64,000 bases of DNA from Selaginella moellendorffii (GCF_000143415.4 NW_003314280.1:1843549-1907548); one strand, 5' to 3'. Shown: positions 23,424-57,700, numbered from the stretch's first letter. Made by a program: numbers and translations. The notes: generated by a model not told the origin, from the sequence alone.

Positions 23424-23455
<32 letters not shown>

Positions 23456-33400: not shown

Positions 33401-35866
33401 GGCCTGGTGGAAAGCTCCTTTCTGGACGGCCTGGACCCGCGCGAGTTTTTCATCCATTCTCTTTCTTCGAGGAAAGGAAACGATGGCAGCCAGCAGCGGT
33501 GCGCGTCGTTCTTCAGATTTCTTATGAGCTATATGAAGGACATTCGCGTCGAGTATGACAACACTATCAGGTCCACGCACGGGGGTCATATTTTTCAGTT
33601 TTCTTATGGAGCTACTGCTGAACCAGGAGAACCAGTGGGACTTTTAGCTGGGACTGCGGTCATAGAACCTGTTTACGATCAGGTGATGAGTTCGTCACCA
33701 CAGGCTTCTACGATGCTGAAAACGCTGCAGGTTAGCTTCTTTTGCTTTTTTTCCTTGGTGTATGCGTGACTTTTATTTTCCAAACTTTCCAGAACATACT
33801 GTTCTCAAATTCGTTCAAAGACATCGATAGGTGTGTCACTCTTAAACTTCAGAAGCTTCCGGTTCAGCCGGAGTGGATAGCATTGCAAGTGCAAGATTTT
33901 CTAAAGCCGGTCACTATTGGGATGCTGGCTTCCAAGATTTGGATTGAGTAAGCTAGCTTCTGTGAACTATTGTTCTTACTGTCACGCTTTTTGCAGATAC
34001 AGTCCCTGCAGTGAAGTTGGCGGGCAGAAGAAAAGAGTGCCGTGGATTGGGTGCTTCGAGTTGCGAGCGGTTAATTTCCTCATATCTATTATTCTTTTCC
34101 TTAACAATGTGTTACATTTTCAGGAAGCAATGGAAAGATGCAGTTTGAACATTGACACAATTGTGTGTCACCTTCGCAAGCAACTCCCAACTAGCTTAGA
34201 TGATCCGGATGCTTTTATTCAAGGGCTACATTTCTTTTCGAGGTAAGGATTTTCTTACGAGATATAGTTTACTTATAAGTAAGTTTAGGGATGTTGAAGT
34301 GTTATGCTTCTTCCCAATCACTTCTTCTGTGAGCAACTATGATAGCAAGCAGATACACAAGCACATGATAGGAACAATGTTTCGAAATTTGCTTCAAGTT
34401 GTCGTGAAAGGTAGATTAGTCTTATAACGTCTGCTAAGTTGAGATGGTATTGGTTTCAGGATGTCCACGAGGAATAGAGTTTGTAAATGTAAAATGGGAA
34501 GACGAGCTATGCATCGAAGTTGCTTTCTTGTCAAGAACCCGAGGCGTTCCATGGACTCATGCATTAGAGGCGTGCGGTTCGATTTCACATTTGGTGGACT
34601 GGCAAAAGTCTACCCCACTCAGCATACAAGAAGTGCACGTCGCTTTTGGAATTGAGGCAGCATACCAGTACTTATTGGAGGTAATGAGCTCAAAAGTTTG
34701 GACATAGCATTGATTATTTTGGCTTTGTGCAGAAACTAAAAGAATTTACGAAAGGTTGTGAGCGGATTATAAACATAGAGCATCTGATGCTCATAGCAGA
34801 TGTCGCTTGCCATTCAGGTTCTGTGAATGGTTTTATAGCTGGTGTGCTAAGAAAACCGTGGAAGAATATCGATGCTAATGAAAGCGGATATGAGGCATTT
34901 GTAAAGAATTTGTCCGGCTGTTCACCCTTGGCCTTTGCAATGGGAAAAGTAAGTATTTCTCCTGAAAAGAGTTTTCTTATGTCTTGTTACAAAAACCTTT
35001 CTTGATCTAGTCCCCAGGAGGTGTGTTTGAAGCTGCTGCGATGAATCGAGAGGTGGATTATTTGGCTGGTGCAAATGAATTGGCATTCTGTGGCAAGAGT
35101 CCCAGTCTTGGAACAGGAGCCAACATTGAGCTTTTCTTCAAAGAGGTGACTGGCATTGACAAAATCTCATTATTAACATGCATTTACAGGATAAGGGACC
35201 TGTTTCACGGTTTCCGGACTTCGAATCACTAGTTTTTTCGAGAAGAGTTGTTGACGACACTGTGTCGGCCACGCTCAGCGCAAAGGACAGAGAAATTGTC
35301 TGGGCAAGGATAGATCAACGCTCTCAAAAGCTGCATGACATATTAAGAAAAAGGTGTGTGGTTGTGCTTTGGACTAACGAGACGATGACTAGAATGCATG
35401 TGCTTTTAGTTTGACAGGAACTCCGGTTTCAGCAGCAAATGAAGCTGTAATCTTAGATACTTTGAAGTATCACCCAATGATGGACAGTAAAGTGGGGTGT
35501 GGTGTCAGGCATATAAGAGTAAGTTCTCGAAGTTTCCTTTTTATTTATTGGTTTTCTTGCCAGGTTGATAATCATCACAGCTTTGGCGGTCGATGCTTTC
35601 ATATTGTTCGACTGGATGGAAGTGTAGAGGACTTTTCTTATCACAGGTGCCTGCTAGAAAGAATCAAGGGCAATACGGTCTTGGTTCAAAGGTACAAGAA
35701 GAAGTATATGAAAGGAAAGAATGGACGAGCTTGTTGCGAGGAGGTTGTTCCAGTCGAGATTTTCTCACAAAACAACGACACAGGCCTCAAGTCATTTTTA
35801 CAACCAAAAGTGAATGAGGGTTTTATGGATGTTATTGGCAAGCTCTGTTCTTTAAAAATATCTTGA
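30409..35866 (+). CDS. RNA polymerase IV/V largest subunit (NRPD1/NRPE1 family), multi-exon, compact
   Basis: Clamp Zn motif CTSC...CPGHSGHIELP; NRPPTFHKH; metal-A site CSPLFADFDGD; GEPVGLLA; GTG.NIEL; C-terminal DeCL-like domain LKYHP...KVGCGV..I.V...FGGRCFHIVRLDGSVEDFSYHRCL. Confidence 0.93.
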
Positions 35867-37649: not shown

Positions 37650-38027
37650 ATGAAACTAAAGGCAATTTTATATTATTCTATCATGTTGATATCAATTTTC
37701 ATCCAAGAAGTTAAAGCCTATTCAGCATCAACAATCCAAGACTGCATTGATACCTTTAGTGTAGCAACTGATGCTGGAGATTATTGTAATTGTGCATCAG
37801 TAGTTTGGATTCAATTTGCTCAGAATGGTTTCCAACCTGGAACTTATACTGCTATTGTTGGTACTTTAGGTATCTTTTTAACAATTAACCATTTCCATGA
37901 GGGCACACATGATGACTTTATGAAAGCAATAGAAGATATATGGGAAATATGTTTATCTTACCATGATGTTGGAGGAGTGCTCATTCTTAGGAATGGATCT
38001 TTAATGATAAGGGTGATGCATGCTTGA
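37650..38027 (+). CDS. Small secreted Cys-containing protein, paralogue of 15-425; C-terminally shortened by a CGA>TGA change
   Basis: Signal peptide MKLKAILYYSIMLISIFIQEVKA; TATA-like tatatataaa ~35 bp upstream; homology to the paralogue continues past the stop to ~38110 (DELE...NLPNKCK). Confidence 0.75.
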   Translation: MKLKAILYYSIMLISIFIQEVKAYSASTIQDCIDTFSVATDAGDYCNCASVVWIQFAQNGFQPGTYTAIVGTLGIFLTINHFHEGTHDDFMKAIEDIWEICLSYHDVGGVLILRNGSLMIRVMHA

Positions 38028-38987
38028 GATGAGTTAGAAGAACTAAAAACTACTAAAGTAGAAGATACATTAATAAAGAATTTGCCTAATAAATGCAAGT
38101 ATATGTTATGAATATAAATATATATATAAATAAATAATTCTTCTATAAAATTTATGTGCATTTAAAATAATCCATCATTATAAATTTTAGATTTTTCTTT
38201 ATAATCTTTATATTGATCTTAAATACAATTATGGTAAGAAATCATTCATATAAAAAGAATATAGAAAAGTTTTTCAAAAATATAGAATTAATTTCATAAA
38301 ATTTATTTTAAGAAAATTCAGTAAATTTATATTAATATTTATTTGTATTATATATATATGATAATATTAGTATAAATATCTTATGTTCCTGGTATTTATA
38401 GCACATAAAAGATATATTTTATTTTATTTGTTATTTATATTAAATATATTTATATAATTATTTTTATACATAAAAGAAACTATATAATCAAGTTACAATA
38501 AATTAAAAATTATTATCAGCTTATCCTATCTAAGTTATTTTTGTATAGGTCAAATGTGAAAGACAAAAGAACTACTTCAATTTATATTTTTTGTGCTTAA
38601 TTATTAAACCAGACTCACCTTGATCCTAATAAGTATATTTTCAAAACAGGAAACATCAAATAAATCAAAGATAAAAATTCCTTTTATTTTTTAAACCTCT
38701 ATAATTTTCCAAAGTATAAATTATACCTTTTGTGTACTATCACAAGATTTCGAAAATAAGATTATTAATAAAAATAAAATGAAATATCATGAATTAAACT
38801 ACTTAAAAGGGGGAAATTATAATTTTGTTTATAGTAGAAAAAACTTGGTACAATTTAAATGCGAGTTAATAGATAAATTAAGATAATTAAATATGGGAGC
38901 GCCCCTGTTACGCATGAAATTCTCATTCATAGCTAGAAATGTAGGAGAGATCCAGTCTGCTGACTGAAAGAAAAGAAAGCCGTGTGA

Positions 38988-40645
38988 ATGATCCGGCGAA
39001 GGCTAGCAGCGAGAGCTCGCACGGCGCCACACGATGACAGCGATTTGATGCGCCTGGATCACCCGGGCCTCGTTTCTTTCCTGCAGTCCTGCGGTGCCAA
39101 ACGAGACTTGGAAGAGGGAAGGCGAGCTCACGCGTTCTTGGAGAGGAGCAATCGCGAGCCCAAGTTCATGAATCTCCTCGTCAAAATGTATGGTCGGTGT
39201 GGTAGAGTCGAGGAAGCCAGGTGCGTCTTTGCCAAGATCCCGGCGCCAAATCTTTACTCGTGGACCATGATTGTCACAGCATATGCCCAAAATGGGCATC
39301 CACACGAGGCGCTAGGGCTCTTGAGGAGAATGGATCTAAATGGGACGCCGCCGGACAAGGTCGTGCTCAGCATCGCGGTCACTGCCTGCGCCAGCATTTG
39401 CGCGCTCTCCCTCGGCAAGCAGATCCACCATCGCGTGGCGACCCTGGGCGTGATCGACGATTTCTTGCGCTCTTCCCTCATCAATCTCTATGGCACCTGT
39501 GGCGAGATCTCTCTGGCCAAGAGTGTGTTTGATTCCATGGCGGCAGGGGCCACAAATCTCGTGTGCTGGGCCACGATGATCAAGGCATTCGTTCGCTGCG
39601 GGCCATTCCTGGCAGGGATCGAGCTCTTCTGGGAGTGGTTTCCAGAGGGGTAAAATCCGACGCGGTGACACTCGTGAGCGCGGTGGATTGCTGCGCGGGA
39701 TTGGGCGATCTGCAGCAATCCCAGGCATTCCACGCGCGCGTCCTCGCGGTGGCGGGGATGGAATCCAACGAGTTCCTGGGCAGCGCGCTGCTGACTATGT
39801 TCGTCCGGTGCAAGGCCCTGGATAGAGCGCGCGCTACCTTCGAGGCCATGGAGGCCAAGAGCGTGGTGCCATGGACGGCCATGATCGCCGCCTACGCGCA
39901 GATCGCACGGCCCAGGGAGGCCTTCCGGTTGTTCCAGAGGATGGCCATGGAGGGCGTTCGTCCCAACGCGGTGACATTCCTTGGGATCCTCGAGGGATTC
40001 GCGACGCGCGCATCGTTCCACCACGGGCGATTGATCCACGCCTGCTTCGACGATGGCAGCGCGCCCATGGCCTTGGAATTCGCTCCACCATCCAGGATCA
40101 AGGTGAGCAACGCGATCCTCGACATGTACGCGCGATGCGGCAGCGTGGACGACGCCAGGGCCGTGTTTGATCGCATGGCATCCAGGACGAACATCTCGTG
40201 GACGTCGATGGTGGCGGCGTATGCCCAGAACGGGCATCCCAGCTTGGCGTTGGAGATCTCCCGGGAGATGGACCAGGTGGGTATGAGCAAGAACGCCATC
40301 ACCTTCATCACAATTCTCTCGGCGTGCAACCACGGGGGATTGCTGGAGGAGGGGATTCGCTTCCTTGCGGGCATGAGGCGCGATCACGGCGTGTTGCCCA
40401 GCAACGCTCACTACAGCTGCGTGATCGATCTGCTGGGCAAGGCTGGGAGACTGGAAGAGGCCGAGAGCATGATCACTGGGCTGGTTGAGAGGCCAGATGC
40501 TGGTTTGTGGAGGTCACTCCTTGGGAGTTGCAGGATTCATGGAGACGAAGAGAGAGCCGGACGAGCTGGGGAGGAGCTCAAGAAGCTGGAGCCATCCGAT
40601 GCTGCCCCATACGTTGTGAAAAAACTGTTTCTTCTTGAGACATAG
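38988..40645 (+). pseudogene. PLS-E class PPR gene split by a 1-bp frameshift near 39635
   Basis: ORFs 38988-39653 and 39563-40645 are consecutive PPR arrays; one added A (gag[A]tggtttccaga) restores ELFWEMVSRGVKSDAVT; E motif WRSLLGSCRIHGD. Confidence 0.85.
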
Positions 40646-41064
40646 TAACCCAATTTCTTTTTCATTTCCAGTTACCGAGTTTAAGAGATGCGAGGAGCCC
40701 GCCCTTCAAATGCGTCTCATTCAGCAGTGTCACATCCAGAATAAACCTTTTGAGAGCTCAGCTTCTTGTTTCCACATCATTGAATATTTCAGGGGATCCC
40801 AAACGCAGTAAAGGAGGAACATAGGGATACTTAGGGATACTGTGTTTTAACGTTTTTACTTCAAAGTGGAAAGTTTGACCAACCAAGACTTTTGTTATTA
40901 TGATGTGTTAATTTAGTTCGGTTCCATTAGCTATTTATGAAAACTTCCAGCATTTAAATTCATAATCTAGCAATATTTCATATTTAATAAATTTTCATGA
41001 TTGTCCCAAAGATTAATTTATAAGACTAAAAACTGGATAAAAAAGCCCTTCAATTGTACACATT

Positions 41065-41205
41065 TGCTGGGATGTCTATTTTAGACATATATCACCACCA
41101 TCAATGTCTAAGACATCTTTGTCTTGGATGGCATGCAATTTGGCCTTGGTGTTGTCTATGCTACTGCATTGCATGTACATGTTGAGGATCACATTGTTCA
41201 CATTG
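41065..41205 (-). pseudogene. CpG-depleted inverted copy of part of the adjacent PPR gene (40100-40243)
   Basis: Reverse complement gtgaacaatgtgatcctcaacatgtacatgcaatgcagtagc vs gtgagcaacgcgatcctcgacatgtacgcgcgatgcggcagc. Confidence 0.85.
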
Positions 41206-41299
41206 ATTGTCAACTACTCCACATTCCTTTCCTAATGTTTCTTTATTTATTTTTTCTTTTTTCACAATTGATTTTTCTTAATTTTTCTCATTTTCTTTT

Positions 41300-42280
41300 T
41301 CTTGCTTTGACATTTCAAACTTTTTTTTTTCTTTAGAGGAGGGGGTTAAGGGGACAAATGGGAGTTTAGCTATGATGATGGAGTAAAGATGAGCAAATAT
41401 AGTATTGGAATGAGGATAAATGACATGGATTATAAAGTGATGATGAGCATAACAAGTCTAAATGGAACATTTAACTTCGACATAATGAAGTTAAATGGAT
41501 GCAATAGTGAAGTAAAGCTAAATATAGATGGCAAAGTAAGGATAAGCATAAGGAATTTGAATAAAGTTAGTGCTTCAAAACTTTTTATCTTTTGAGAAGG
41601 GGATAAAAAGGAGTGAAAAAAAAATGGAGTGAGTTCAATTTCTTATATGCAATGTTAGATAAAGACAAAGAGGCAAGCTCTACTTATGGTCATGAGTCTA
41701 AGTTAACAACGATTTCAAAGAATTATCGGCAGACAAATTTAAACATAGGATGTATGATTTCATGGACTACATTAATTCTCAAAGTTCCTTATTTTGGTTC
41801 AAAATTATGATTTCGAGGTTGGTTTAAGCATTTAGCAACTACACATATAGTTACAATCGGTTTATCAGAATTTTACAGTCAATTATGCCATAGTATTGGG
41901 TTTTGTTTCAGTCATGGTTTTTATCAATTTTATTGATGGTTTTGTGGGAACTTTGGATTCTTATAGTAGTTTATAATTGCCAAGCAAAAGCTCTAGATGT
42001 TCCATTTGACTTATTGCCATCATCTTTTTCATCTTTCGGAAAGAAAGATGGTGTAAAGTTTGTATATATATGTATGTATATGTATGTGTATGTATATATA
42101 TGTATATATGTATATGTATGTATATATGTATATATGTATATATATGTGTATATATATATATTACCTTGGCTAAATAATACATTAATTATAGTACTATAGC
42201 ATATGGACTATCTATTTGAGATTGAATTTGGTCCATTCATTCTTGTATACAAGTAGGGTTAAAACCATAAAATATACCTA
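41300..42280. repeat. Dispersed AT-rich repeat, second member (see 23200-24180), with a (TA/TG)n microsatellite at 42061-42160
   Basis: Reverse-complement homology to 23200-24180. Confidence 0.75.
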
Positions 42281-42584
42281 TTTCTATATCTTGAGCATTC
42301 ACATATCTTAATAAATAAAAAATTAGTGTTGCTAAAAGAAAAATCATACTTTATACACTAAAGATGTTTAGAATTTATAGATTTGAAATGATCTCTAATT
42401 ATATTTATATGTTTTTATTTCTTTTATAATATATTAATAATAAAATATAATATTGAATTTATTTATGATGTTTATTCTATTATATGTACAAATGTCACAG
42501 ATTAATAGAAACACTATTTCTAATTATTTATTAAAATATAAAACTAGCTTTATACATTTGTAGTTTTTCTTCTCAATATTGAGT

Positions 42585-43472
42585 ATGAATTTATTTATGT
42601 TTCTAATTTTTTTATGCATTAAAACTAACAAAATTTTAAGCACTTATCAGTATTATGGCCAAAATGCTATGGAAATTGAAAGTGTTGATTTAGTTTTATA
42701 TGCAATGCAGTTAATGATTAATAATATATCTTATGAACCCTTACCTAAAGGTCAAGGTATGCGATTTGAATATCATATACAAGATAATACTCATGGTTCA
42801 CTATCTATTGCAAATCAATTATGGGTTTATGATAGTAAAGGAAAACAATATGATACATGTGCTGCAAACCCAAGTAATTATGAACAAGACCATGGAAAAA
42901 ATGTTCAAAATCGATTAAATTTTATATTAAATTTATATCGTTATGATATAAAAAGATTACGTGCAAATTATTTTCGAGCTGTTGTTGGTTATTATTGTGT
43001 TGAATATCTTGTAAAGAACTTTCGACAAGATTTACTCTTTCAAGATGTCTATAAAATAAATAATTTAATTGATTGTGATATAAAAATAACCACATTAATT
43101 AGTAATATGCCAGCTAACTCTCTTAAACCATCCCAATTTTTAACATCACCAAATAAAAAAGCTTTATTATACTTACATTTAAATTGTATTTTATCATTAT
43201 ATATACATAATGATTTAAAATGGTACAAAGGATTTCAGGGTTATCAAAATTGTTTATTTATTATAGAAGAAGATGGGCATATAGTATTATATTCTGAAAA
43301 TAAAAATATAATTTGGTCCCCAAAAATTAATTTTGATAGATCACATAATTATTTTATAAGATTTATTTCACTTCAGGATGATTGTAATTTAGTTCTTTAT
43401 GAATCTCACCAGAAATTTTTTTCAAAAAATCCAATAGTTGAACCAAAATGGGCTTCACAAACATATTGCTAA
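42585..43472 (+). CDS. Secreted protein: unknown ~155-aa domain + C-terminal bulb-type (GNA/B-) lectin domain, copy 1
   Basis: Hydrophobic N-terminus; NSLKPSQFLTSPN, IIEEDGHIVLY, SLQDDCNLVLY (QxDxNxVxY), PKWASQT; intronless, extremely AT-rich. Confidence 0.85.
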   Translation: MNLFMFLIFLCIKTNKILSTYQYYGQNAMEIESVDLVLYAMQLMINNISYEPLPKGQGMRFEYHIQDNTHGSLSIANQLWVYDSKGKQYDTCAANPSNYEQDHGKNVQNRLNFILNLYRYDIKRLRANYFRAVVGYYCVEYLVKNFRQDLLFQDVYKINNLIDCDIKITTLISNMPANSLKPSQFLTSPNKKALLYLHLNCILSLYIHNDLKWYKGFQGYQNCLFIIEEDGHIVLYSENKNIIWSPKINFDRSHNYFIRFISLQDDCNLVLYESHQKFFSKNPIVEPKWASQTYC

Positions 43473-44514
43473 TATACACTACTTTATATTATTACACATA
43501 TATATTAAATTAATAAATTTACAATAATGTCTATTATGTTCTAACTATATATACTGAATTCATGCCATAACTCAGGTTGTGGCATGCTAGCTACCACCTC
43601 TTGGCATGAAGGAATGATATGCTAGGCCATGGGCTATGCAAATGTGTTGGTAAACTAGGCTATTACTTTAATAATTGAATAATAATAATAATAAATCACT
43701 TAGTTTTGTCCATTAAAGTGTTGATCTAATTTTTGTGGGGACTCGGATCGTGGAACCTTGTTAATCCCCAGGTAGGCTGTTTCGACCAAAAGCCAGCTGA
43801 TCAGCTGATCAACCTGGCTATGATCGTCTAGCTGCAGTGGATCTTGCAGTTCTGTAGAAGAACCTGGCTTAAGAAGCTACTCTGCCAGCTTTCTCATCTC
43901 ATGCTGAAGCAATCAAGAATTAGTCCATCAACTCTGCTACCACCATCTCCACTTTCCACACTGAACTGTAAGGGACGAGCAACCAAAACCATTATGCCAC
44001 ACTAGTGAGAGAACATGATCATCGTCCCATCTGGATGTCTGTCTGCAAACGATGTATCCCAGGTAAGCGGGGTTGTCGGGCATATAAAGTCCAGCGGATC
44101 GAACTGCGCTCTCTTTTTTACACTGCCAGTGCCCAAGTCCAATCTTTGTGGCATAGTTAGCTCGTACTTGATCTACAGCGATAACCCTAATAGTAAAGAT
44201 TGATTAGTTCGTGCGTGTAGCAGACTTGTTCTTCACTTGTTTTTGTTTGCGTCATCAAGTTGAACTTGTTATAATCTCGTTTCCTCTCTCTTTCTCTCCC
44301 CTCACAGGATCTTAAGATCGATCAAATTTCTCTCCTAGGTATCCCTTTTCTCTTTTGTTGTATATCTTTGATCGTTTTGCTCACATTCCTAAAATCTGCT
44401 ATAGAGTGATGTGTCTTTGAAAATTGCCCCCGAGAACACATGACGCGAGCGCCGTCCCCTAGGCATTGTTCCTCCACAATTCATTGCGATCGGGAAGAGA
44501 AGGAACAGAAAGAG

Positions 44515-44971
44515 ATGGATCATCGACCGGTGCTCGCGCGCGTGTTGATGGTGGCGATGGTGACCATCGCAGCGGCGCCGCCTCTGATCCGCAGGATCGG
44601 CTCTCGAGCGATTTCTACTCCGCCAGCTGCCCCAACGTGGAATCCATCGTCACCACCACCATGAACAGGCTCTCGTCGGAAAACAACGTCGTCCCCATCG
44701 GGATGCTCCGATTGCTTCGTGGAGGTGACTCCCGATCGATCAATACAAATTCGAACTTTTCTTTGATCGAGCTCTTCTCTTTTGCGCAGGGATGCGACGC
44801 CTCGATCCTTCTCACAGGCCCGTCAACGGAGAGAGCTGCGATGGACAACCTGGATTTCCCCCAGAATCCTTCGACGCCATGGACGAGCTCAAGAAAACAA
44901 TGGAGGAATCGTGCCCGAGAGTCGTCTCGTGTGCCGACATCCTCGAGATGGGCACCCGCGACGCGGTCACC
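44515..44971 (+). pseudogene. Truncated class III peroxidase pseudogene
   Basis: Copy of exons 1-2 of 55942-57475 with small deletions/frameshifts; the distal RLFAHDC motif is deleted (atgctccgattgcttc). Confidence 0.9.
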
Positions 44972-45004
44972 AATGTCTCCCAATTTCCACGATTTGCACG
45001 ATTG

Positions 45005-46130
45005 TAGTGCCTCGTATTTCCTGGACATCTGGGTAAAAATCACTCTTTTGAGATTTCTTACTCTGTGGTGAAACTCCATGATCTCAGACTTAAGTTTTGC
45101 AGGAGAATACCTTGCACTCACAGGCTCGAAACTGGACAGCGCTGATATGCTAGCTTGTGGCATCGCTACGCATTTTGTCCCTTCAAAGGTGGTTTTCCGT
45201 TTTCTAATCTCTTCTTACATTTCAATCAAAAACTATTGCAGGATGTTCCGGAGCTTGAGAAGACTTTGCTGAATTTACAACCGGAAAGCTCAATACAGGA
45301 GGCTATCCAGGGATTTGCTAAGATGCCTGAAGCTGAAGCGAGCAGTGTCATGAAAAGGCAAAACTTTCCACGATGGAATTTTACGTATGAACTAACAAGC
45401 TTCCATGCTTTTCCAGGATGACTTGGATAAACAACTGCTTCTCGAAAGACCGAGTTGAAGAGATAATCGAGTCTCTGGTGAGTACCTGAGGCGTTTGCGT
45501 TGATTTCGTTCTTGATAAATCCCGCTTGTCAACCGTTTCACTAGGCCAGTACCAATGACGAATGGTGTAAAGAAACTGCGCGGTCACTGAGGCGCCTCTT
45601 GCCAATTGCACTCAAGCAAGCCTTAGCATCGGTTAGAAGAAAACTCTATCTCTCTCGCGCGTGCGCAACTTTTTTGCTGATTGTGTTTGGAATTGTCAAC
45701 ACAGATCCGCCAAGGCAGGACTCAGAGCTTGAAGAAATGCTTGGAAAGAGAGCAGCGGATTACTCTAAATTGCTTAAGGAGCCTAGTCTCGGATGATCTC
45801 TACGAAGTAAGGTCTTCGGTTTCCTGGTTCCATAAAAGTTCTTTCTGCTTCTTTCCGATTATGACTAGGGGATTAGAGCTGTGGTTGTGGATAAAGATCG
45901 CGCTCCAAAGGTTGGTTGTAACTTGGCTCTCAAACGTTAAGGTTAATTGGTGAAACTTTTGCAGTGGAATCCATCGACTCTTGCAGAAGTCACGGATGAC
46001 ATGGTAGAGATGATCTTGAACACCTACACTGCCAGGGAGCAAATTCAATTGCCTCTGGAAGACGAGGAAAGGTAAAGTAACTAAAATCTTTTGTCATCCC
46101 TTCAAACCCTTCATTTCAAGATGGAGTGGC
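45005..46130 (+). pseudogene. 5'-truncated, intron-containing 3-hydroxyisobutyryl-CoA hydrolase (HIBCH-like) fragment
   Basis: PGHLGEYLALTGSKLDSADMLACGIATHFVPS, WINNCFSKDRVEEII.SL, Q.LEEMLGKR / DDLYEG.RAV.VDKD..PKWNPSTLAEVT. Confidence 0.85.
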
Positions 46131-46658
46131 AAGTACTCGGCCTCAAACTCCCGCCATTTTCTTGTTTGAATTCAAAATAATCGCGAATATTCATGAGGCT
46201 TAGAGGCTTGGGGAAGAAACTCTCGAGGACGCACGGAACCAGAACCACTTCGATGGGAGATCAGCATGCATCTCGGCAGTGATCTCCGAGTGGTGGCGGA
46301 TGTCACTAGCGGCAATTCGTCTTCAGAGTTTGGATGGGTGGTGATCTTCCTCCTAAGAGCAGAACATGAGTATGACTCGAAGCAGGGTAGAGTTTTTTTC
46401 TCTCTTACCATTTGCATTCCAAAGAGCGCGATTCAGTAGCGTATTTATTATACTTATCCTGATCGACTTTTAGAGCTCTGCTGCTTGTGCTCCACAAATT
46501 AGTCCGTCACGCTCATCATCTGGATTGTTCCGAACATGCCATTGAGGTAGAGCGTAATCCTGGTGGAAGGAAGAACTTTAGACAAGCTAGAAAGATTAAC
46601 GAGAAAGAGTTGATTTGATGAACACTGAAATGATTCGAACATTGACAGACGGAAGGGT

Positions 46659-47825
46659 CTGGAATTCGCTCCACCATCCAGGATCAAGGTGAGCAACGCG
46701 ATCCTCGACATGTACGCGCGATGCGGCAGCGTGGACGACGCCAGGGCCGTGTTTGATCGCATGGCATCCAGGACGAACATCTCGTGGACGTCGATGGTGG
46801 CGGCGTATGCCCAGAACGGGCATCCCAGCTTGGCGTTGGAGATCTCCCGGGAGATGGACCAGGTGGGTATGAGCAAGAACGCCATCACCTTCATCACAAT
46901 TCTCTCGGCGTGCAACCACGGGGGATTGCTGGAGGAGGGGATTCGCTTCCTTGCGGGCATGAGGCGCGATCACGGCGTGTTGCCCAGGAACGCTCACTAC
47001 AGCTGCGTGATCGATCTGCTGGGCAAGGCTGGGAGACTGGAAGAGGCCGAGAGCATGATCGCTGGGCTGGTTGAGAGGCCAGATGCTGGTTTGTGGAGGT
47101 CACTCCTTGGGAGTTGCAGGATTCATGGAGATGAAGTGAGAGCCGGGCGAGCTGGGGAGGAGCTCAAGAAGCTGGAGCCATCTGATGCTGCCCCATACGT
47201 TGTGAAAAAACTGTTTCGTCTTGAGACATAGTAACCCAATTTCTTTTTCCTTTGCAGTTACCGAGTTTAAGAGATGCGAGGAGCCCACCCTTCAAATGCG
47301 TCTCATTCAGCAGTGTCAGATCCAGAATAAACCTTTTGAGAGCTCAGCTTCTTGTTTCCACATCATTAAATATTTCAAGGGATCCCAAACGCAGTAAAGG
47401 TGGGGATACTGTGTTTTAACATTTTACTTAAAAGGAAAACTAATAATACATTTGTGAATGGGATATGCAACATTTTGGAGAGTTTGACCAACCTTAGTCC
47501 ACCAAGACTTTTGTTATTATGATGTGTTAATTTAGTTCGGTTCCATTAGCTATTTATGAAAAGTTCCTGCATTTAAATTTACAATCTAGCAATATTTTAT
47601 ATTTAATAAATTCTCATGATTGTCCCAAAGATTAACTTATAAGACTGAAAACTGGATAAAAAAGCCCTTCAATTGTACACATTTGCTGGGATGTCTGTTT
47701 TAAACATATACCACCACCATCAATGTCTAAGAGATCTTTATCTTGGATGGCATGCAATTTGGCCTTGGTGTTGTCCATGCTACTGCATTGCATGTACATG
47801 TTGAGGATCACATTGTTCACATTGA
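46659..47825 (+). repeat. Segmental duplication of 40073-41205 (3' PPR fragment 46689-47231 + downstream flank)
   Basis: Near-identical from ggaattcgctccaccatccagg onward; lacks the PPR 5' part. Confidence 0.92.
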
Positions 47826-48005
47826 TCCTGGATGATGGAGCAAATTGGGTGTGCTACCATCATTGAAGTAGGCGTGCATCAATCACCCATGGTGGAATGA
47901 TACACATGTTACGAATCACCTCATTCCCCTGGAACTGCTGAAGGTATCCTAGGCCTTGTGATCTGTACATGGGTAGAGATCATGGTTTTCCATGGCACAC
48001 CGCTC
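47686..48005 (-). pseudogene. Longer CpG-depleted inverted PPR copy (matches ~39860-40243)
   Basis: Reverse complement gattcgtaacatgtgtatcattccaccatgggtgattgatgcac vs gattcgcgacgcgcgcatcgttccaccacgggcgattgatccac. Confidence 0.85.
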
Positions 48006-49777
48006 AACTACAACCTTGCCTTGAGTTGAGAGGCAACTCAATGGCATGAATTTCTCAAAAATAATATGTCAATTTATTGGTGACCAGCAATTGCTAGTCA
48101 AGGTTATCAAGGATTAGACAATAAAAGATTCCAAACGCTGGGCTCTTAGTGGCTTCAGGCCTCACACTACTCCTCATCACTGCAGCCCTTAGCAACAGGA
48201 TGACTCACTTCCCTTGGTTTGGGGATGTAAGTGCTCCAACACTAAAATTGGCTATATAGTTAGTCATATGGTTTGCAATTTGGTATATTGCATACTGTAA
48301 GTGGCAGAGTAGCCTTGTTGTTACGATCCGCTGAGGTTTATCCCTCTGTCCCACCGATTTGTCCCACCCACCGAAGGAATAGAGGTATTTAAGAAATTAT
48401 TTAAAGAGTTTTTACTACTGAATTATTCATGCATTATACCTTGGCTTTTGAAGAACAATTATGTAGTTTGCACTTGTCTTATTTAGCACAGTGTCTTGGC
48501 AATTAAATCGTTCAGCAGCTCATAATACCCATTACTGTCATATTGCAGGTAACATTAATTTAAGGTCTTCACCATCATAGGAAGTGGAATTGTCTTGATG
48601 TTGCACAGGAATTCGATGATCCCAAACAGACCCTCCTCCAAGCCAAAATTAAGTAAAAGCCATATAGCACCCCTCTATAATTTATTTTTTCAACTGTGGA
48701 ATTAAAGAGACAATGTGCCACGCCATGCCAAGCCACATTACCATATTCTGTGGCTGCCAAATTAGAGGTCCAATATTAATCTAAGAGGCAATAGACATTG
48801 ATTAAATCCAAATATCGATATATACCTAAAGGATTGAACCACTAGCTCTAAACTAGATTTATTTAGAGGACCCGGTATTAGCTAAAAGCTTTATTTCTAT
48901 TTTAATTGGTTTTATTTGGAAATTTTGTAGCATTAAAATATTAGCAAGGATATGTATGTGAATCCCATTTTGGTATAATTATTGTGTCTAGAAAATAGTT
49001 TTTGATGAGATTCATAAAGAACTAAATTACAATCATCTTGAAGTGAAATAATCTTATAAAATAGTTTTTTGAATTTTTATAATTAATTTTTGGGGACAAA
49101 ATTGTAACTGTTTTTCCAGAATACAAAATTATTTGTCCTATCTTCCTGTACTATGAACTCACAATTATGATAATTATGAAATCCTCTAAACCATTTTAGG
49201 ATATTATGCATATATAATGCTTGTCAAGGGTATAAATATATCCTTGATATTTAAAATTTTATCCATTATTAATTTAAATTTACTTTACCAATACAATTCT
49301 TTAGGTGCGTGCCAGCAATGCTCACTATAGTTGTGTGATCAATCTGCTAAGGGGTAAATTTGATGCAATGCTCCATACTAATTATTGTGTTATGTGATGT
49401 TTAGGACAAATGTGTCCTTTTCCCACTGGATAACAAAGGAAAAGCTCTTGGTTTTTCTTCCACAAAAAGGAAGCATGCTTCTTCCCCCCAAAATGACCAA
49501 ACTATTAATGCATCCACCCGTGGCAAATATACATGGGCCAAAACAAATAATGACAAAAAAAAGAGAAATGTTAAATAGGTATTTTAATCTTAAGCTTTAT
49601 GGGGACTGAAACAAAAGAAAAAAAAAAAAAAGAAAGCAGAGAGTAAAAAAAAAATACTAAGAAGCAGAGAGTATGATTGCTGGGCTGATTGAGAATGCTG
49701 GCTTGAGAATGTGGAGGTCACTCTTTTGGGAGCTGGAGGATTCATTGAGATGAAGAGAGATCTCGAGAAAAAGGTCT

Positions 49778-52700
49778 TCATGCTTTGGGAAACATACACT
49801 CCTCATACAAAGCCACGACTTCCTTCTTGGGCGTGTTGGAGCGCAGCTGCATCACCTTTGCGCCATACCCGGCCTCGGTCATCTCGTGTTTCATCTGCGC
49901 AACCGTGAGCTTGCGATAGTCACGCTGCTGGCTTTGTTGATTTTGGTTTTGCTGCTGCTGCTGCTGTTGCTCGGTGCTGGCATGATCGTCCATACTCTCC
50001 CCCGGAGTGAACCCCAGGCTACTACCATTGTCAAAGTTAAGGTCCAGGCGAGGCCTCTTGTTCCGCCCCAGGCTCTCGCTCGGCGGCGGCGTCATCTCCG
50101 GCTCCTTGTCATCCGACCCGCGCTTCCTCCTCCCCGACGACTCCGCCTGTGTTCGCAGCTTCGTCTCCAGCGCCGTCTCGTTCAGCCGGGACGTGGCCAG
50201 CTCGTGCTGGAACGAGTCGAGCTTCGCCTGGACGCCCTGGAGCTGGATTGACAGTGCCTCGGCCCTGCCGCTGGCTTCCGCGTGTGCTGCTCGCTCCGAC
50301 GTCAGTAGCCCCTCGAGGACGTGCGCTGTGCTGATCCTCTGCTCGTGAGCCTCCTGGAGCAGGACCTCCATCTCATGTTCCCGCTCTTCCAGGCGCCTCT
50401 CCAGGGACTGGCACTTGGTCGACGCATCCTGCTCCGCCACCTTTGCGGTTTCTAGCTCTTGCAACAAGCCCTCCTTCTCCCTGGCCAGGGCCTCGGCATG
50501 CCGCTCCGCCTTCTCTATGCCGGCCAGTCTCTCCATCGCCATCATTTGGTAGTGTTTCGACTCTTCGCGTAGAGCAACGAGCTCCTCTTCTTCCGCAAGC
50601 GCCTTGGCCTCGTGAGCCTGAAAGAACAGTTGCCGAGTTTAAGAAAAGTAAAAGAAACACGAAGAGCCCAACCTGCATGCGGGCCTTCAAATCAGTCACA
50701 AGGCGTTCGCTCTGCTCCAGCTTCGCGTTCGTCTCATTTAGTACAGTGTCCTGGCAGATGAAATTCAGAAAGATGGCAAAATACTCACATAGAAACAAAC
50801 CTTTTGCGACAACTTAGAGGCAAACTCGGTTCGCAGCGCATCTTCTCTCACTTGTTGTTGTTTGTTTCCACGTTCCCGAAGCGCATTGAACCGTTCAGCG
50901 GATGAGCGGGACTCATTGATCACAGAGTCATGTTTCCTCCGCCATTCGGCGGCCTCCTCCTTTGCCGAGTCGGCCTGCTCACGCGCAGCCGCCAGTCGTG
51001 CTTCCGCAGCACTACACCTGCTTTGAAGTGCCGAAAGCTCGGATCTTTGCCTCTCCTCCACTAGGCGTCGGTCCCCAGACGCATGCTCAAACTTTTTTTG
51101 CCACTCCAGGGCTTCCTTCAGCGCTACTTCCAGCTGCTGTGCAAGGCTAACCCGCTTCTCTTCTGACTTGCCAAGTTTACTCTGGAGACTTGCGTACTGG
51201 CCCGCCGAGAGCTCACTAGAAGATTTGTAGTCCGCTATGGCTGCTTCATACCTTCTCTTCCAGTCCATGGATTCTCTTTGCGCAGCTTCTATCTGTCGTC
51301 CGGTCAGTGCAAGCTTATCTTCCAGCGAACGGCATTTCAAATCGAGACTTGAAGCTTGTGATGCTGCTTGATGACTAATTTTCTTAAATAGATCGCTGAT
51401 TGATCCTTCCAAGCTGCAACAGACCAGAAGTTTTGTAAGGCCAAGTTCTAAGAAACATGTTACTCACCTCTGTTGAATAAATTTTACAAGTTTTTGCCAT
51501 TTGGCAGGTCCAAAAACCGATTTCTCGTATTGTACAATTAGCTCGTTTAATAACTGTAAAGCGCTTATAGTTATATTACAAAAAAAAAAGAAAAGAAAAA
51601 AAAAGAAAAAGAAAAAGTTACCTGCAATATCTGATCCAGGGAAGCATTTGGCGAGTGGCATGCCATTCTTAATTTATCATCCATGCCTTCAATCACTTTC
51701 ACGCATTTCAGCTCTGCTTCCATTGAAGACCTTTGCTTGTAGTCCTAAAAAGAAAGCTGATACGATGCATAAATGGAAAACAAATGTAAATACCTCGAAA
51801 TGCTTTCTTAGAGCCGTTTGCAGCTGTCTTTCATACTTTGACCTGATAGGACCCGCTCCGACAGCCTCAGCATTATACACAGAGAGAGAAGCTTGGAATG
51901 CTTTATCGTGTGCTTCTTGCAAAGCATTCTGTAAGACAAAATCGTAAACGATCTGACTTGAGTTCTAGTAATGGTTACCAGGTCTGGAGGTGTCGATTTA
52001 TCAAAGGACCTCATGTAAGTCTCCAACGCCACATCGTACGCACGGCGGCACTCATTCTCCTCAACATTCTGTACAGTAGAGAGAAAATAATCAAAGAGAA
52101 CAAAATGGGGCAAGCGTTACCTGCCATGATGTAGCAATTGTGGGGACAGCACCTGCGTTTATAGCGTCCAGAAAAGACTGTGTTAGACCTGCAAGCATGG
52201 GACCTGTCATCACAGTGGACCCAAGCTGTTTCGGCCTAGTTCTCTCGATAACGAATTTTGTGAGATGATCCAATCCAAGACGAAATTCAGATCGCATCTT
52301 CTCCATCTGTAGGCACTGTATGAGGAACGAACGACCGAAATAGCGACAACGTACTGGTAAAAGATCAAGTCTCTGGAGGTCATGCTCCTCATTCACGGGC
52401 CGCACAAGAGTGAAGCAATGCCTGTCTGGAAACAAAGCACGGATGGACTCTCGAATCTGGAAAAAGAAAATGGCACTAGCTTTGGACATAGTCAATCATA
52501 AGAAAACCTCGTTCTTGGCATAAATTGCTTTGCCACTTCCAGGCATTGGCTGCAGAGCGGACTCGAGGTATTCCCTGGGTGTAATCCTCCGTCCGTCTTC
52601 ATTAAGATCGAGATAGAAGTCCTACACATTACATATCAGAAGCTATAAGAAAATAACGTGAAACTCTCACCCTGAGCAACCAGAGAAAAACTGGAGAGAA

Positions 52701-53552
52701 CTGTCCAAGCTCGTCTGCAGTCGTAGTCTTTTGCGAAGCCCTGACGCGAATGTGCTTTGTCATTTCCGTTACCAGGGACAAACGATCCAAGGCAGCCTCG
52801 TCAATTCCTCCCATCTAGAAAGTCCATGGATAAGTTATCAGTAGTCGTTCTTTTTTCTTGGTTTCGTAAGAAGACGACACGTACTTGGTTGTAGACGAAC
52901 ATACTGGACAACAGCACCGCGAGTGAGAAGATCTGCGTGCTGTACGTTCCCTACATTGAAGAACAGAACGACGAGTTAAAAAAAAAAAGACCACAAGAAA
53001 AACCCAAAGAAACCAACATACCGTCTGATCATAAGAATCGATTCCTTCACTGTCGAGTAAGAGAAGATTATACTCCGTTCCATCCGGAGCAAACCTCTTG
53101 ATTGGAGCGCTCCACATCCAGAGTCCTTTGGTGCATGGTCGGTGAGTCGGACCCACTTGAAATCCGCTACTCCGGCCTAGCAGCTATGCGCTGGACGTAT
53201 TAAAAACAAGCACGATGGCAAAAGGAAAAGAAAACACTACACAGAGTTACACAAGCAAAAGTACCTGGTTTAAGATGAAGCTCTTCCCCTGCCGGGCTCG
53301 CCCACACACCGCCACCACGCCAATCGGCCCCTTGACCAGCTGCAATGCCGCCACGGCCTCAGCATCCATCCGAAATCTCCCCTTGTCATCGCAATAGACG
53401 AGCCGGATCGCCTTTGCCGGACCTGTGCCATTGGAAGCATTGGACGCTGGAGCCGCGGGCGGCGCTACCGCGGCGGTGGCCGGATCGAGCTCCACAATCC
53501 TCTTGGGTGTCCCTGGTGGAGCGCCGCCGCCGAAACCCAGCCTGCTAAACAT
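49778..53552 (-). CDS. GBPL3: Guanylate-binding protein-like GTPase (GBPL3-like) with long coiled coil, disordered region and C-terminal helical domain
   Basis: GRARQGKS P-loop, PCTKGLWMWS, LLDSEGID, FLWLLRDFYL; C-terminal DYRKLTVAQMKHEMT...KKEVVALYE. Confidence 0.9.
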
Positions 53553-54008
53553 CTCTAGCCCTGGAAACCTTCTAGGTCAGCTCAGCTGCCGGGATGCCCA
53601 GTCGCATTCTTTCTTGCCGGAAGCTTGTACCCGCGCGCCTTTGCTGCCCTAGAAACCACACCAATGGAAGGTTAAACGGATAAAAACGTTTTAGGGTGGA
53701 ATTTATACTCATCAGAAATGAATAAATTGTATCTTAACAAATAACAAATTAGTGTTGCTAAAAGAAAAATCATACTTTGTAACAAAGACGTTTAAAATTT
53801 ATAGATTTAAAATGATCTCTAATCATATTGATATGTTTTTATTTATTCTACAGTATGTGAATAATAAAATCCAATATTGAATTTATTTATATTATTTATT
53901 CTCTTATATGTACTAATGTCACAAATTGATAGAAACACTATTTCTAAGTATTTATTAAAATACTAAATTAGATTTATAAATTTTTAGTTTTTCTTCTCAA
54001 TATTGAGT

Positions 54009-54896
54009 ATGAATTTATTTATGTTTCTAATTTTTTTATACATCAACATTAATACAATTTTAAGCACTTATCAATATTATGGCCAAAATGTTATGGAAAT
54101 TGAAAGTGTTGATTTAATTTTATATGCAATGCAACTAATGATTAATAATATATCTTATGAACCCTTACCTAAAGGTCAAGGTATGCAATTTGAATATCAT
54201 ATACAAGATAATACTCATGGTTTATTAACAATTGTAAATCAATTATGGGTTTATGATAGTAAAGGAAAACAATATGATACATGTGCTGCAAACCCAAGTA
54301 ATTATGAACAAGACCATGGAAAAAATGTTCAAGATCGATTAAATTTTATATTAAATTTATATCGTTATGATATAAAAAGATTACGTGCAAATTATTTTCG
54401 AGCTGTTGTTGGTTATTATTGTGTTGAATATCTTGTAAAGAACTTTCGACAAGATTTACTATTTCAAGATGCCTATAAAATAAATAATTTAATTGATTGT
54501 GATATAAAAATAACCACATTCATTAGTAATATGCCAGCTAACTCTCTTAAACCATCCCAATTTTTAACATCACCAAATAAAAAAGCTTTATTATACTTAC
54601 ATTTAAATTGTATTTTATCATTATATATACATAATGATTTAAAATGGTACAAAGGATTTCAGGGTTATCAAAATTGTTTATTTATTATAGAAGAAGATGG
54701 GCATATAGTATTATATTCTGAAAATAAAAATATAATTTGGTCCCCAAAAATTAATTTTGATAGATCACATAATTATTTTATAAGATTTATTTCACTTCAG
54801 GATGATTGTAATTTAGTTCTTTATGAATCTCACCAGAAAGTTTTTTCAAAACATCCAATAGTTGAACCAAAATGGGCTTCACAAACATATTGCTAA
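54009..54896 (+). CDS. Secreted unknown-domain + bulb-type lectin protein, copy 2
   Basis: Same length as 42585-43472 with about 15 amino-acid differences; intact ORF. Confidence 0.85.
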   Translation: MNLFMFLIFLYININTILSTYQYYGQNVMEIESVDLILYAMQLMINNISYEPLPKGQGMQFEYHIQDNTHGLLTIVNQLWVYDSKGKQYDTCAANPSNYEQDHGKNVQDRLNFILNLYRYDIKRLRANYFRAVVGYYCVEYLVKNFRQDLLFQDAYKINNLIDCDIKITTFISNMPANSLKPSQFLTSPNKKALLYLHLNCILSLYIHNDLKWYKGFQGYQNCLFIIEEDGHIVLYSENKNIIWSPKINFDRSHNYFIRFISLQDDCNLVLYESHQKVFSKHPIVEPKWASQTYC

Positions 54897-55941
54897 TATA
54901 TACTACTTTATATTATTACATATATATATATATATATATATATTAAATTAATAAATTAACAATAATGTCTATTATGTTCTAACTATATCTACTAAATTCA
55001 TGCCATAACTCAGGTTATGGCATGCTAGGAATGATATGCTAGGCCATGAGCTATGCAAATGTTGGTAAACTAGGCTATTGCTTTAATAATTAAATAATAA
55101 TAATAATAAATCACTTAGTTTTGTCCATTAAAGCGTTGATCTAATTTTTGTGGGGACTCGACCTTGTTAATCCCCAGGTAGGCTGTTTCGACCAAAAGCC
55201 AGCTGATCAGCTGATCAAGCTGCAGTGGATCTTGCAGTTCTGTATGTGTTCCACACAAAAGCCCAGGCCTAGAAGAACCTAGCTTAAGAAGCATATACTC
55301 TGCCAGCTTTCTCATCTCATGCTAAAGCCATCAAGAATTACCTCTGCTACCACCATCTCCGCTTTCCACAATGAACTGTAAGGGACGAGCAACCAAAACC
55401 AATATGCCACACTAGTGATAGAACATGATCATCGTCCCCTCTACCAATCTGGATGTCGGGCATATAAAGTCCAGCGGATCGAACTGCGCTCTCTTTTTTA
55501 CACCAAGTCCAATCTTTGTGGCATAGTTAGCTCGTGCAGGGATGCGATCTTGATCTACATGACCTTGCTTGCGATAACCCTAATAGTAAAGATTGATTAG
55601 TTCGTGCGTGTAGCAGACTTGTTCCTCACTTGTTTTTGTTTGCGTCATCAAGTTGAACTTGTTATAATCTCCTTTCCTCTCTCTTTCTCTCAGGATCTTA
55701 AGATCGATCGAATTTCTCTCCTAGGTATCCCCTTTCTCTTTTGCTTTCCTCTCTTTCTTCGTTGTAAGTCGCTATCTTTGATCGTTTGGCTCACAGCTCG
55801 ATCCTTCTATTCCTAAAGTCTCTTATAGAGTGATGTGTCTTTGAAAGGATCCAACGAACCGCCCATTCACTCCAGGCATTGTTCCTCCACAATTCTCCGG
55901 AATTCTTTCATTGCGATCAAGAAGAGAAAGAACAGAAGGAG

Positions 55942-57475
55942 ATGGATCATCGGCCGGTGCTCGCGCGCGTGTTGATGGTGGCGATGGTGACCATCGCAGC
56001 GGCGCCGCCTCTGATCCACGCGCAGGATCGGCTCTCGAGAGATTTCTACTCCGCCAGCTGCCCCAACGTGGAATCCATCGTCACCACCACCATGAACAGG
56101 CTCTCGTCGGAAAACAACGTCGTCCCCATCGGGATGCTCCGCCTCTTCGCGCACGATTGCTTCGTGGAGGTGACTCCCGATCGATCAATACAAATTCGAA
56201 TTTTTCTTTGATCGAGCTCTCTTCTTTTGCGCAGGGATGCGACGCCTCGATCCTTCTCACAGGCGCGTCAACGGAGAGAGCTGCGACGGACAACCTGGAT
56301 TTCCCCCAGAATCCCTTCGACGCCATGGACGAGCTCAAGAAAACAGTGGAGGAATCGTGCCCGGGAGTCGTCTCGTGTGCCGACATCCTCGCGATGGCCA
56401 CCCGCGACGCGGTCACCTTTGTAAGTTTTCCACAATCTATCTCCATCCAATCCATATCCTTGCGAGGAGTTCTTCCACTCCTTTCTCTCCTATCTTCTCT
56501 CGGATCACCCCACACACATATGGATCACAAAAGCACACACGGATCGACTGCCATGCATCCTCTGTCTGTGCTGTCGGTTGCTCCCGGATTTGGCGAGTTC
56601 GTTGCGTTGTTCGACTGGCACTCACCCGGACTGACGCTCGCAAAACTTGTTCTTTTGTTTCTTTCTTCAGAGTGGCGGACCAAGCTGGACAGTCCTCAAG
56701 GGACGGCTCGACGGGACCATCTCACGCGAATCCCGCGTCGCCGGGCACTTGCCCGGCGCCGACTTCGACGTGGAGGAGCTCGAGTCCAATTTCGGCGCCC
56801 TGGGACTCTCTCTCGAGGACATGGTCGTCCTCTCAGGTACTTAAATAGAAACAAGCCCTCCCCCCTGTTTGCTCTCGATCCAATCCTCTCGTGGGCGATC
56901 GCAATTTCGCGAGAATTTTGCTCCTGCTGGAACCCAATACGATTCTCTAGCACCCCACATTCGCGATTTCTCGCCATCGCGCGGCCGAGACATATGCCCG
57001 AGCAGGGCATTCCCTGTTTTCTTCGTTGCAAATTCCCGCTGTTCTGGCATTGATCGTTTCTTTCTCGCGATCAGGGGCACACACGATTGGATTCTCTCAC
57101 TGCCACCAATTCACCAGTCGCCTCTACGGCTCCTCCGGCAGCGATCCCTCGCTCAGCCCCAGCTTCGTCAGCACCCTCCAGAAGCAATGCCCGCAATTCG
57201 GCGGCAATCCCACCACCGTCCAGGCGTTTGATATCAGCACCCCCTTCGCCTTCGACAACTTGTACTACAAGCACCTCCTCACGGACGAGGGCCTCTTGGT
57301 CTCCGACTCGACGCTCACCACCAGGAACGACACGCTCCGCCTCGTCAATCTCTTTGCCAACAGCCAGGAAGCGTTCTTCTCTGCGTTTGCGCGGTCGATG
57401 GTCCGGCTGGGATCCGTGGGTGTCAAGACGGGGTCGGGTGGCGAGATCAGGAGAGTTTGCTCCAGAGTCAACTGA
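55942..57475 (+). CDS. Class III secretory peroxidase, 4 exons
   Basis: Signal peptide; FYSASCPNVE, LRLFAHDCFVEGCDASILL, VSCADILAMATRD, LSGAHTIGFSHC, FDNLYY, GEIRRVCSRVN; classic three-intron pattern. Confidence 0.95.
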
Positions 57476-57700
57476 TTCCTCATCACCAGCTGAGCACCTC
57501 CATAGCTGTAAAGTCCAAATGGTTTTGTTTTCCTTCCTTTTTTTCTTCGTTTTTTTTTTCGATAAGCGGAACTAAGAGTTCCACCTGTATCAAAATGGTC
57601 AGAATAAACACGCAACAAGGGAGAAATAACTCGCTTTGCAAGCTACTTGTTCTTCGCTTGTCTCTTCTCTGGTGCCTTGAGTTGTTCTTCCTCGGCATAG

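Follow-up and report, generated by a model that had tools for sequence, protein, structure and literature searches.

The question raised by this locus is how two intact genes for a protein that joins an unrecognised domain to a bulb-type lectin have come to lie, intronless and extremely AT-rich, among the GC-rich genes of a plant. The stretch concerned (hereafter the window) comprises 64,000 nucleotides of the Selaginella moellendorffii genome and corresponds to scaffold GL377584.1 of GCA_000143415.2, starting at approximately position 1,843,549. In our interpretation, which we consider fairly probable, the two open reading frames (ORFs), termed lectin-fusion copies 1 and 2, are young paralogues of a lineage-specific, unannotated family and encode a probably secreted, disulfide-stabilised two-domain chimerolectin that is under purifying selection.

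Both ORFs, as reported in a first-pass annotation of the window, ran uninterrupted from ATG to stop (Table 1). Their products were identical at 280 of 295 positions (95%) in a gap-free alignment, and the coding DNA differed at 23 of 888 nt without insertions or deletions (indels). Counting the 15 amino acid replacements gave the distribution noted earlier, with 13 before residue 176 and two in the lectin part. The strongly A/T-ending codons described for the pair were equally evident: the GC content of both ORFs was 24%, with 36, 26, and 12% at the first, second, and third codon positions (GC1, GC2, and GC3), respectively, whereas the exons of nearby genes (peroxidase, GBP-like, and PPR) had a GC3 of 74-79%. 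Islands of approximately 25% GC surrounded both ORFs (41801-43701 and 53601-55201). The longest open frame observed was 302 codons; among 2,000 islands shuffled by mononucleotide, the maximum was 186 and the mean 67. Since no shuffled island exceeded 186 open codons, the 295-codon frame is not a product of chance. An exact-sequence look-up of both products showed that neither was recorded as a called gene.

Searched exhaustively with phmmer, a set of 1.84 billion representative proteins yielded 509 matches at E<=1e-3, and the sole plant match among those listed was a pair of 75-aa Selaginella models labelled as partial (EFJ13259 and EFJ04329). These proved to be fragments of intact 297-aa ORFs, the public models being truncated. 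The two ORFs lie on other scaffolds, at loci termed L001 and L002 (Table 1), and have a GC content of 28% and a GC3 of 13%; the two loci were 92% identical to each other over 4.5 kb. The encoded proteins aligned collinearly with that of the window from end to end at 35% identity (E=6e-50); by domain, identity was 26% for the N-terminal domain (N-domain) and 45% for the lectin domain. Invariant across the four-sequence alignment were the cysteines at positions 92, 164, 201, 223, 267, and 295, the motif QDDCNLVLY, and the Cys-ending tail. Judged by these alignments, the family is real, old, and unannotated, because intact 297-aa paralogues with 35% identity over the full length occur on two other scaffolds. 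In an independent DNA run, word depth rose to approximately 110 over the ORF vs. 14-18 over the single-copy peroxidase; together with contigs of that run carrying 1-nt deletions, this is compatible with several near-identical copies, some of them dead. The literature searched contained no mention of the partial Selaginella models or of a fusion of the N-domain with a lectin.

The architecture proposed in the first-pass annotation, a signal peptide followed by an unrecognised domain of approximately 155 residues and a GNA-type lectin at the C-terminus, agreed with our analysis. The putative signal peptide was called by eye from an N-terminal hydrophobic stretch, for which the mean Kyte-Doolittle hydropathy was 2.1-2.7 over the first 11-residue windows; four of the 15 replacements between the window copies sit in this leader. 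The lectin domain covers residues ~176-290; the conserved C-terminal tail after it has Cys295 as its last residue. In a phmmer search of PDB sequences, residues ~178-283 matched gastrodianin-4 (E=4e-7) and GAFP-1 (E=8e-7), and more than 15 GNA-family chains, including garlic, daffodil, snowdrop, and Polygonatum lectins, fell below 1e-3, in line with the earlier GNA-type assignment. For the 150 listed of the 509 matches in the exhaustive search, the best stretches all lay on residues ~175-295, except for a short one in P0141 (residues 35-77). Both paralogues passed the gathering threshold of Pfam B_lectin (PF01453), L001 with 37.3 and L002 with 38.9 bits. The window copies carried a single canonical QxDxNxVxY sugar site, as had been noted, at residues 264-272; the sites at 198 and 228 were degenerate (HLNCILSLY and EEDGHIVLY, respectively). 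Two canonical sites were present in L001 and L002. Cys201 and Cys223, invariant in the family, aligned with both cysteines of gastrodianin, and by this alignment the intradomain disulfide of GNA lectins is kept in the lectin-fusion family.

Fold searches for the lectin part gave mixed results. Foldseek with models of pLDDT (predicted local distance difference test) 40-42 placed bulb lectins on top (E ~0.02, TM scores of 0.1-0.3), and VIA-align returned SPRY and galectin folds. The latter neighbours, obtained with the single-sequence model, were clearly wrong. Assignment to G-type lectin S-receptor kinases or S-locus glycoproteins was discarded: no S_locus_glycop, PAN, or kinase domain was found by Pfam, and the lectin is C-terminal, with the protein ending 20 residues beyond it, unlike the order in S-receptor kinases. 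The putidacin L1 family model NF033557 matched at 28.2 bits (E=1.2e-6; profile positions 11-129 of 274), far below its cut-off of 275, and tandem MMBL domains were absent; membership of the lectin-like bacteriocins was therefore rejected.

The N-domain had no match in Pfam at E<=10 and none in NCBIfam or PHROGs, and a profile search of the PDB returned a single row, a chance match with E=0.29. No relative was found in the exhaustive search of representative proteins, in a local phmmer search against 162 fetched proteins, or in scans of viral (IMG/VR), metagenome, and prokaryote-genome contigs with the N-domain alignment. Word-based protein searches returned nothing for the full protein, the N-domain, or the lectin domain. 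With the whole protein as query, feature-based searching of the ESM-Atlas pointed weakly to B-lectins and rotifers; with the N-domain, it gave nothing. The earlier description of this domain as unrecognised thus held for every collection searched. AlphaFold2 modelling reached a pLDDT of 41.8 with the single sequence and 39.8 with the four-sequence family alignment. A structural search with the alignment-based model against 48,161 chains placed members of one fold class at ranks 1-5, 11, and 14, namely Y3, KP4 (two chains), DUF26 (three chains), and LDL, which together make up seven of the top 14. Among known systems, this class takes in the KP4 killer toxin, the Zt-KP4 effector, the fungal lectins Y3 and LDL, and plant DUF26 domains as in Gnk2 and the ectodomains of PDLPs. 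The coherence of this list is notable, and a structural relationship of the DUF26, Y3, and LDL folds has been reported (PMC6368629). Since the models have a pLDDT of approximately 40, the fold searches provide leads only, and a KP4/Y3/DUF26-like α/β sandwich is a weak lead that we regard as possible, with the greater part of our expectation lying elsewhere. Membership of DUF26/Gnk2 (PF01657) itself was rejected, as no Pfam match was obtained at E<=10 and the C-X8-C-X2-C motif was absent; the only invariant cysteines of the N-domain in the four-sequence alignment were 92 and 164.

The two pairs of copies allowed selection to be assessed twice. For the window pair, the numbers of nonsynonymous (dN) and synonymous (dS) substitutions per site were 0.021 and 0.050 over the whole ORF (dN/dS 0.42), and 0.024 and 0.072 in the N-domain (dN/dS 0.34). 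For L001 and L002, the corresponding values were 0.029 and 0.075 over the whole ORF (dN/dS 0.38), 0.038 and 0.071 in the N-domain (dN/dS 0.54), and 0.021 and 0.077 in the lectin domain (dN/dS 0.27). The ORFs of L001 and L002 were, like those of the window pair, free of indels, in contrast to their flanks; the flanks of the window pair contained many gaps and 4-11% mismatches, and those of both pairs were 4-14% different and rich in indels. Ratios of approximately 0.4 in two independent pairs, together with indel-free ORFs, argue for purifying rather than diversifying selection, and these comparisons indicate that it acts with moderate strength on both ORF pairs. A diversifying N-terminal domain had been suggested from the clustering of replacements, and this suggestion was not supported, given the N-domain ratios of 0.34 and 0.54; the asymmetry was also present in synonymous changes, with six before residue 176 and none in the 68 synonymous sites after it. 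The last 375 nt contained two of the 23 differences of the window pair (P=5e-4), whereas the L001/L002 pair had no such 5'/3' asymmetry. Since silent sites share the asymmetry, the 3' half of the window pair has likely undergone gene conversion (homogenisation) or has a more recent common origin.

The AT-richness itself can be read in two ways. The window ORFs had a ratio of observed to expected CpG of 0.38-0.45 and the paralogues one of 0.17-0.22, accompanied by a TpG+CpA excess of 1.3-1.4; elsewhere in the window, the ratio was 0-0.29 in other AT islands and 0.9-1.1 in neighbouring genes. CpG depletion with an excess of TpG/CpA is the classic footprint left by the decay of methylated cytosine to thymine, and the composition points to long-term cytosine methylation and deamination as the source of the AT-richness. 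Combined with the AT-rich non-coding flanks and the AT-rich deep paralogues, the CpG footprint strongly favours an endogenous mutational origin over a foreign one, and the fact that paralogues of only 35% identity are both AT-rich implies long residence in the genome. The first-pass annotation had considered horizontal acquisition, which in its explicit form would be fairly recent, from an AT-rich bacterium, protist, fungus, or invertebrate, with the composition as the signature of the donor. A GC3 of 12% beside approximately 75% in host genes would fit such an event, as would the non-plant character of the top lectin-domain matches by total score, which among the matches listed were bacterial/metagenomic multi-lectin or foraminiferan proteins, and the presence of rotifer clusters among feature-based look-alikes. 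The bacterial total scores, however, are high through summing several repeats, and lectin-domain identity was approximately 30-40% to all matches, with no donor standing out; the closest matches were mostly unnamed metagenome proteins. Furthermore, no protein outside the family contained the N-domain in the collections searched, non-coding flanks and unrelated islands of the window share the composition and the CpG depletion, and AT-richness is just as marked in the deep paralogues of this genome. We therefore regard a donor origin as very improbable. The other proposal made for these genes, that they are maintained inside heterochromatic islands, gained support from the transposable-element-like CpG depletion, a compositional argument, combined with the evidence of selection.

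An endogenous origin would also be compatible with genes that no longer function. If the family were a silenced relic, with frames still open merely through recent duplication, this would fit the methylated-looking composition, the lack of a full-length annotated model, and the run search, which listed none recorded as RNA, as well as the frameshifted local copy and the 1-nt deletions in some contigs of another genotype; dN/dS is, moreover, not very low. Such a relic is difficult to reconcile with paralogues that have diverged by approximately 65% at the amino acid level and are nonetheless all intact, with cysteines and motif conserved, or with the synonymous excess in two independent pairs and the absence of indels in ORFs vs. 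indel-rich flanks. Because a random codon in AT-rich DNA is a stop with a frequency of approximately 9%, 295 open codons cannot persist without selection, and we consider functionless genes unlikely. Conservation could also stem from selection on a mobile element or old endogenous virus carrying the ORF as cargo, or from repeated recent copying. The gene is intronless and, by word depth, multi-copy; its composition differs from that of host genes, and its CpG depletion resembles that of repeats; copy 1 adjoins a repeat shared with 23195-24134, in a mosaic of captured-looking fragments; and genes resembling those of nucleocytoplasmic large DNA viruses have been reported in S. moellendorffii (PMC4083422). 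That report, however, makes no mention of lectins (PMC4083422), no terminal inverted or direct repeats were found around either copy, and the 35%-identical paralogues share no flank similarity. Neither a transposase nor a viral hallmark ORF was present next to copy 2 or in the ±10 kb around L001, and at L004 the ±10 kb contained neither hallmark ORFs nor further members of the family. The only neighbours of copy 2 are two host genes, the IMG/VR scan returned no relative of the N-domain, and it is not obvious what a secreted lectin would contribute to transposition. Cargo of this kind is accordingly quite unlikely in our estimation.

A family of selected chimerolectin genes, the reading that we prefer, would account for the locus as follows. 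The protein would consist of a leader, an α/β orphan domain of approximately 155 aa with one pair of cysteines, a GNA-type lectin, and the Cys-ending tail, in which the lectin would retain its canonical disulfide and one (window) or two (paralogues) mannose-site motifs. Frames, cysteines, and lectin motif have been held by purifying selection across approximately 65% protein divergence, inside decayed AT islands. The window pair would have arisen by a 2.7-kb segmental duplication, with its 3' half probably homogenised later by gene conversion. The lectin domain may bind mannose-type glycans on microbes, herbivores, or cell walls, and the N-domain may provide a second binding or toxic activity, following the 'AB' logic of chimerolectins. 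A role in defence, with an effector domain delivered by a targeting domain, would be a reasonable expectation from the architecture.

Several observations weigh against this explanation. The methylation-like decay suggests silencing, and some copies are dead, as seen in the frameshifted third copy in the window and in the contigs with 1-nt deletions in run X4. Annotation omits or truncates the lectin-fusion genes. The window copies scored 20.6 and 20.9 bits on the B_lectin model, vs. a gathering threshold of 32.4, and retain one of three sugar-site motifs. A dN/dS of approximately 0.4 represents moderate constraint only and derives from 23 and 33 substitutions, and secretion, sugar binding, and the defence role are predictions from sequence. 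Expression likewise lends no weight, as none of the runs in the search was recorded as RNA, and those that are small and unclassified were indistinguishable from DNA. In two of these, of unrecorded kind, a 617-nt contig matched copy 1 (X1), carrying 10 of the 11 copy-1-specific letters that it spans (of 12 differences from copy 2), and a 451-nt contig matched copy 2 (X3) exactly. Both contigs were confined to the ORF; since the DNA run showed equally ORF-only coverage, they are no evidence of transcription.

Table 1. Positions of the lectin-fusion copies, their parts, their paralogues, and selected neighbouring features (window positions unless a paralogue locus is named).
Feature	Position	Strand	Description
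Lectin-fusion copy 1	42585-43472	+	ATG to stop, 295 codons plus stop, intronless; within a mosaic of gene fragments
Copy 1, hydrophobic leader	42585-42641	+	Residues 1-19; putative signal peptide
Copy 1, N-domain	42642-43109	+	Residues 20-175, ~155 aa; invariant Cys92 and Cys164
Copy 1, GNA-type (B-lectin) domain and tail	43110-43469	+	Residues 176-295
Lectin-fusion copy 2	54009-54896	+	ATG to stop, 295 codons plus stop, intronless
Copy 2, hydrophobic leader	54009-54065	+	Residues 1-19; putative signal peptide
Copy 2, N-domain	54066-54533	+	Residues 20-175, ~155 aa; invariant Cys92 and Cys164
Copy 2, GNA-type (B-lectin) domain and tail	54534-54893	+	Residues 176-295
Degenerate third copy	48938-49219	-	3' lectin part only, ~79% nt identity; frameshifted pseudogene fragment
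Paralogue L001	L001 3398-4291 (GL377634.1)		Intact 297-codon intronless ORF; GCA_000143415.2
Paralogue L002	L002 3398-4291 (GL377953.1)		Intact 297-codon intronless ORF; GCA_000143415.2
Duplicated block, first copy	42304-44971	+	Lectin gene, flanks, and a truncated peroxidase gene (5' part, two exons)
Duplicated block, second copy	53730-56417	+	Lectin gene and 5' part of the complete peroxidase gene
Complete class III peroxidase gene	55879-57475		Downstream of copy 2; start ~1 kb from copy 2
AT-rich spacer, ~450 bp	53553-54008		Between the GBP-like first exon (minus strand) and the copy 2 start codon
PPR protein, 900 aa	7968-10667		Exact annotated product of GCA_000143415.2, GL377584.1

The duplication that had been described for the gene was confirmed, with the qualification that its unit is larger: a blastn self-comparison showed 87% identity with many gaps over 2.79 kb between the two blocks in Table 1, and the 2.7-kb unit includes exons 1 and 2 of a class III peroxidase as well. 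Downstream of copy 1, the peroxidase sequence (44440-44971) ends at the duplication boundary. Copy 2 is flanked on one side by the 5' end of the GBP-like gene on the minus strand and on the other by the intact class III peroxidase gene, and the spacer that separates it from the GBP-like gene is a candidate shared or bidirectional promoter. Run X4 (DNA, labelled as the same organism) was compared with 53500-57600; within the peroxidase gene, it showed approximately 1% divergence from the window as well as small indels, one of them an 11-nt insertion after 56855, which suggests another genotype or haplotype.

Copy 1 is surrounded by what looks like a patchwork of gene pieces that were captured or rearranged. 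A 1.1-kb PPR fragment occurs twice (40074-41207 and 46660-47826; 93% identical, 6.6 kb apart) and brackets copy 1, the truncated peroxidase, and a fragment resembling enoyl-CoA hydratase (~45078-45272). Copy 1 alone is adjoined by an AT-rich repeat of approximately 0.9 kb (41382-42288), found again in inverted orientation at 23195-24134 with 70-76% identity; it includes a TA/TG microsatellite in each place (42061-42161 and 23372-23465) and is probably a decayed transposon. Farther away, an inverted duplication of approximately 1.5 kb (21255-22804 and 26307-28132; 80% identity) contains ORFs of 332 and 367 aa without a Pfam match, and a very AT-rich stretch with a run of N (about 25560-26110) lies between its arms. 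A dispersed repeat of approximately 0.4 kb (76% identity) was present at 3-412 and 37683-38098, in AT-rich islands 37 kb apart. The segment 15856-16505 is a GC-rich tandem array whose period is 12, with 23 and 80 as alternative readings; it has approximately 40 copies of GTCCGAGATGGA-like units and strong GC and AT skew, located inside long ORFs on both strands without a Pfam match. A long exon at 31952-33769 encodes RNA polymerase Rpb1 domains 2-5 with the metal-binding motif ADFDGD and likely belongs to the largest subunit of a nuclear RNA polymerase, possibly of the Pol IV/V type.

Several known systems resemble the lectin-fusion protein in part. Its C-terminal ~110 residues align with GNA lectins (PF01453) such as gastrodianin (GAFP-1, entered in the PDB as 'antifungal protein GAFP-1') and the snowdrop and garlic lectins, with both disulfide cysteines and one intact site. 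GNA lectins consist of single or tandem lectin domains, whereas the lectin-fusion protein adds a front domain of 155 aa and the Cys-ending tail; its window copies differ further in having two of three sugar sites degenerate and in being encoded by an intronless, AT-rich, unannotated gene. In type-2 ribosome-inactivating proteins, the lectin is C-terminal, as in the lectin-fusion protein. With chimerolectins in general, among them these proteins, hevein-chitinases, and the fungal AB-toxin-like CCTX2 (PMC13324453), it would share secretion and the combination of a carbohydrate-binding module with an unrelated one; the likeness is one of architecture only, the N-domain having no sequence similarity to a known effector domain. 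One MMBL-type domain also aligns with the lectin-like bacteriocins putidacin L1/LlpA and pyocin L1, but these have tandem MMBL domains, whereas the first half of the lectin-fusion protein is unrelated and its gene is eukaryotic and nuclear.

In fungal 'two-speed' genomes, such as that of Leptosphaeria maculans with its AT isochores, effector genes reside in AT-rich, repeat-rich compartments. The lectin-fusion genes resemble these effectors as small, AT-biased genes for putative secreted proteins in decayed AT islands beside GC-rich housekeeping genes. They differ in belonging to a plant genome, in a CpG depletion consistent with methylation rather than repeat-induced point mutation, and in being under purifying selection. 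A bolder extension of our interpretation, which we put forward as speculative and on balance doubtful, is that S. moellendorffii maintains a concealed stock of secreted chimerolectin genes in such methylated, AT-decayed islands, which would make these islands the plant equivalent of the fungal compartments. The N-module would then be a new toxin or glycan-binding fold, or a KP4/DUF26-like one diverged beyond recognition, and expression would be conditional on stress, infection, or a life stage with relaxed silencing.

If the genes are expressed, S. moellendorffii would possess a multi-copy family of secreted lectin fusions that annotation has overlooked, retaining only 75-aa fragments, and that lectin surveys based on gene models (PMC6362431) would also have missed. 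A 155-aa domain without a relative among 1.84 billion proteins would then be a candidate new binding or toxin module. Genes with a GC3 of 12% and CpG decay like that of transposable elements, beside genes with approximately 75%, would imply that selection holds a reading frame open in apparently methylated DNA, which would bear on how plants retain and regulate genes in heterochromatin, and gene finders trained on one compositional class may miss whole families of this kind.

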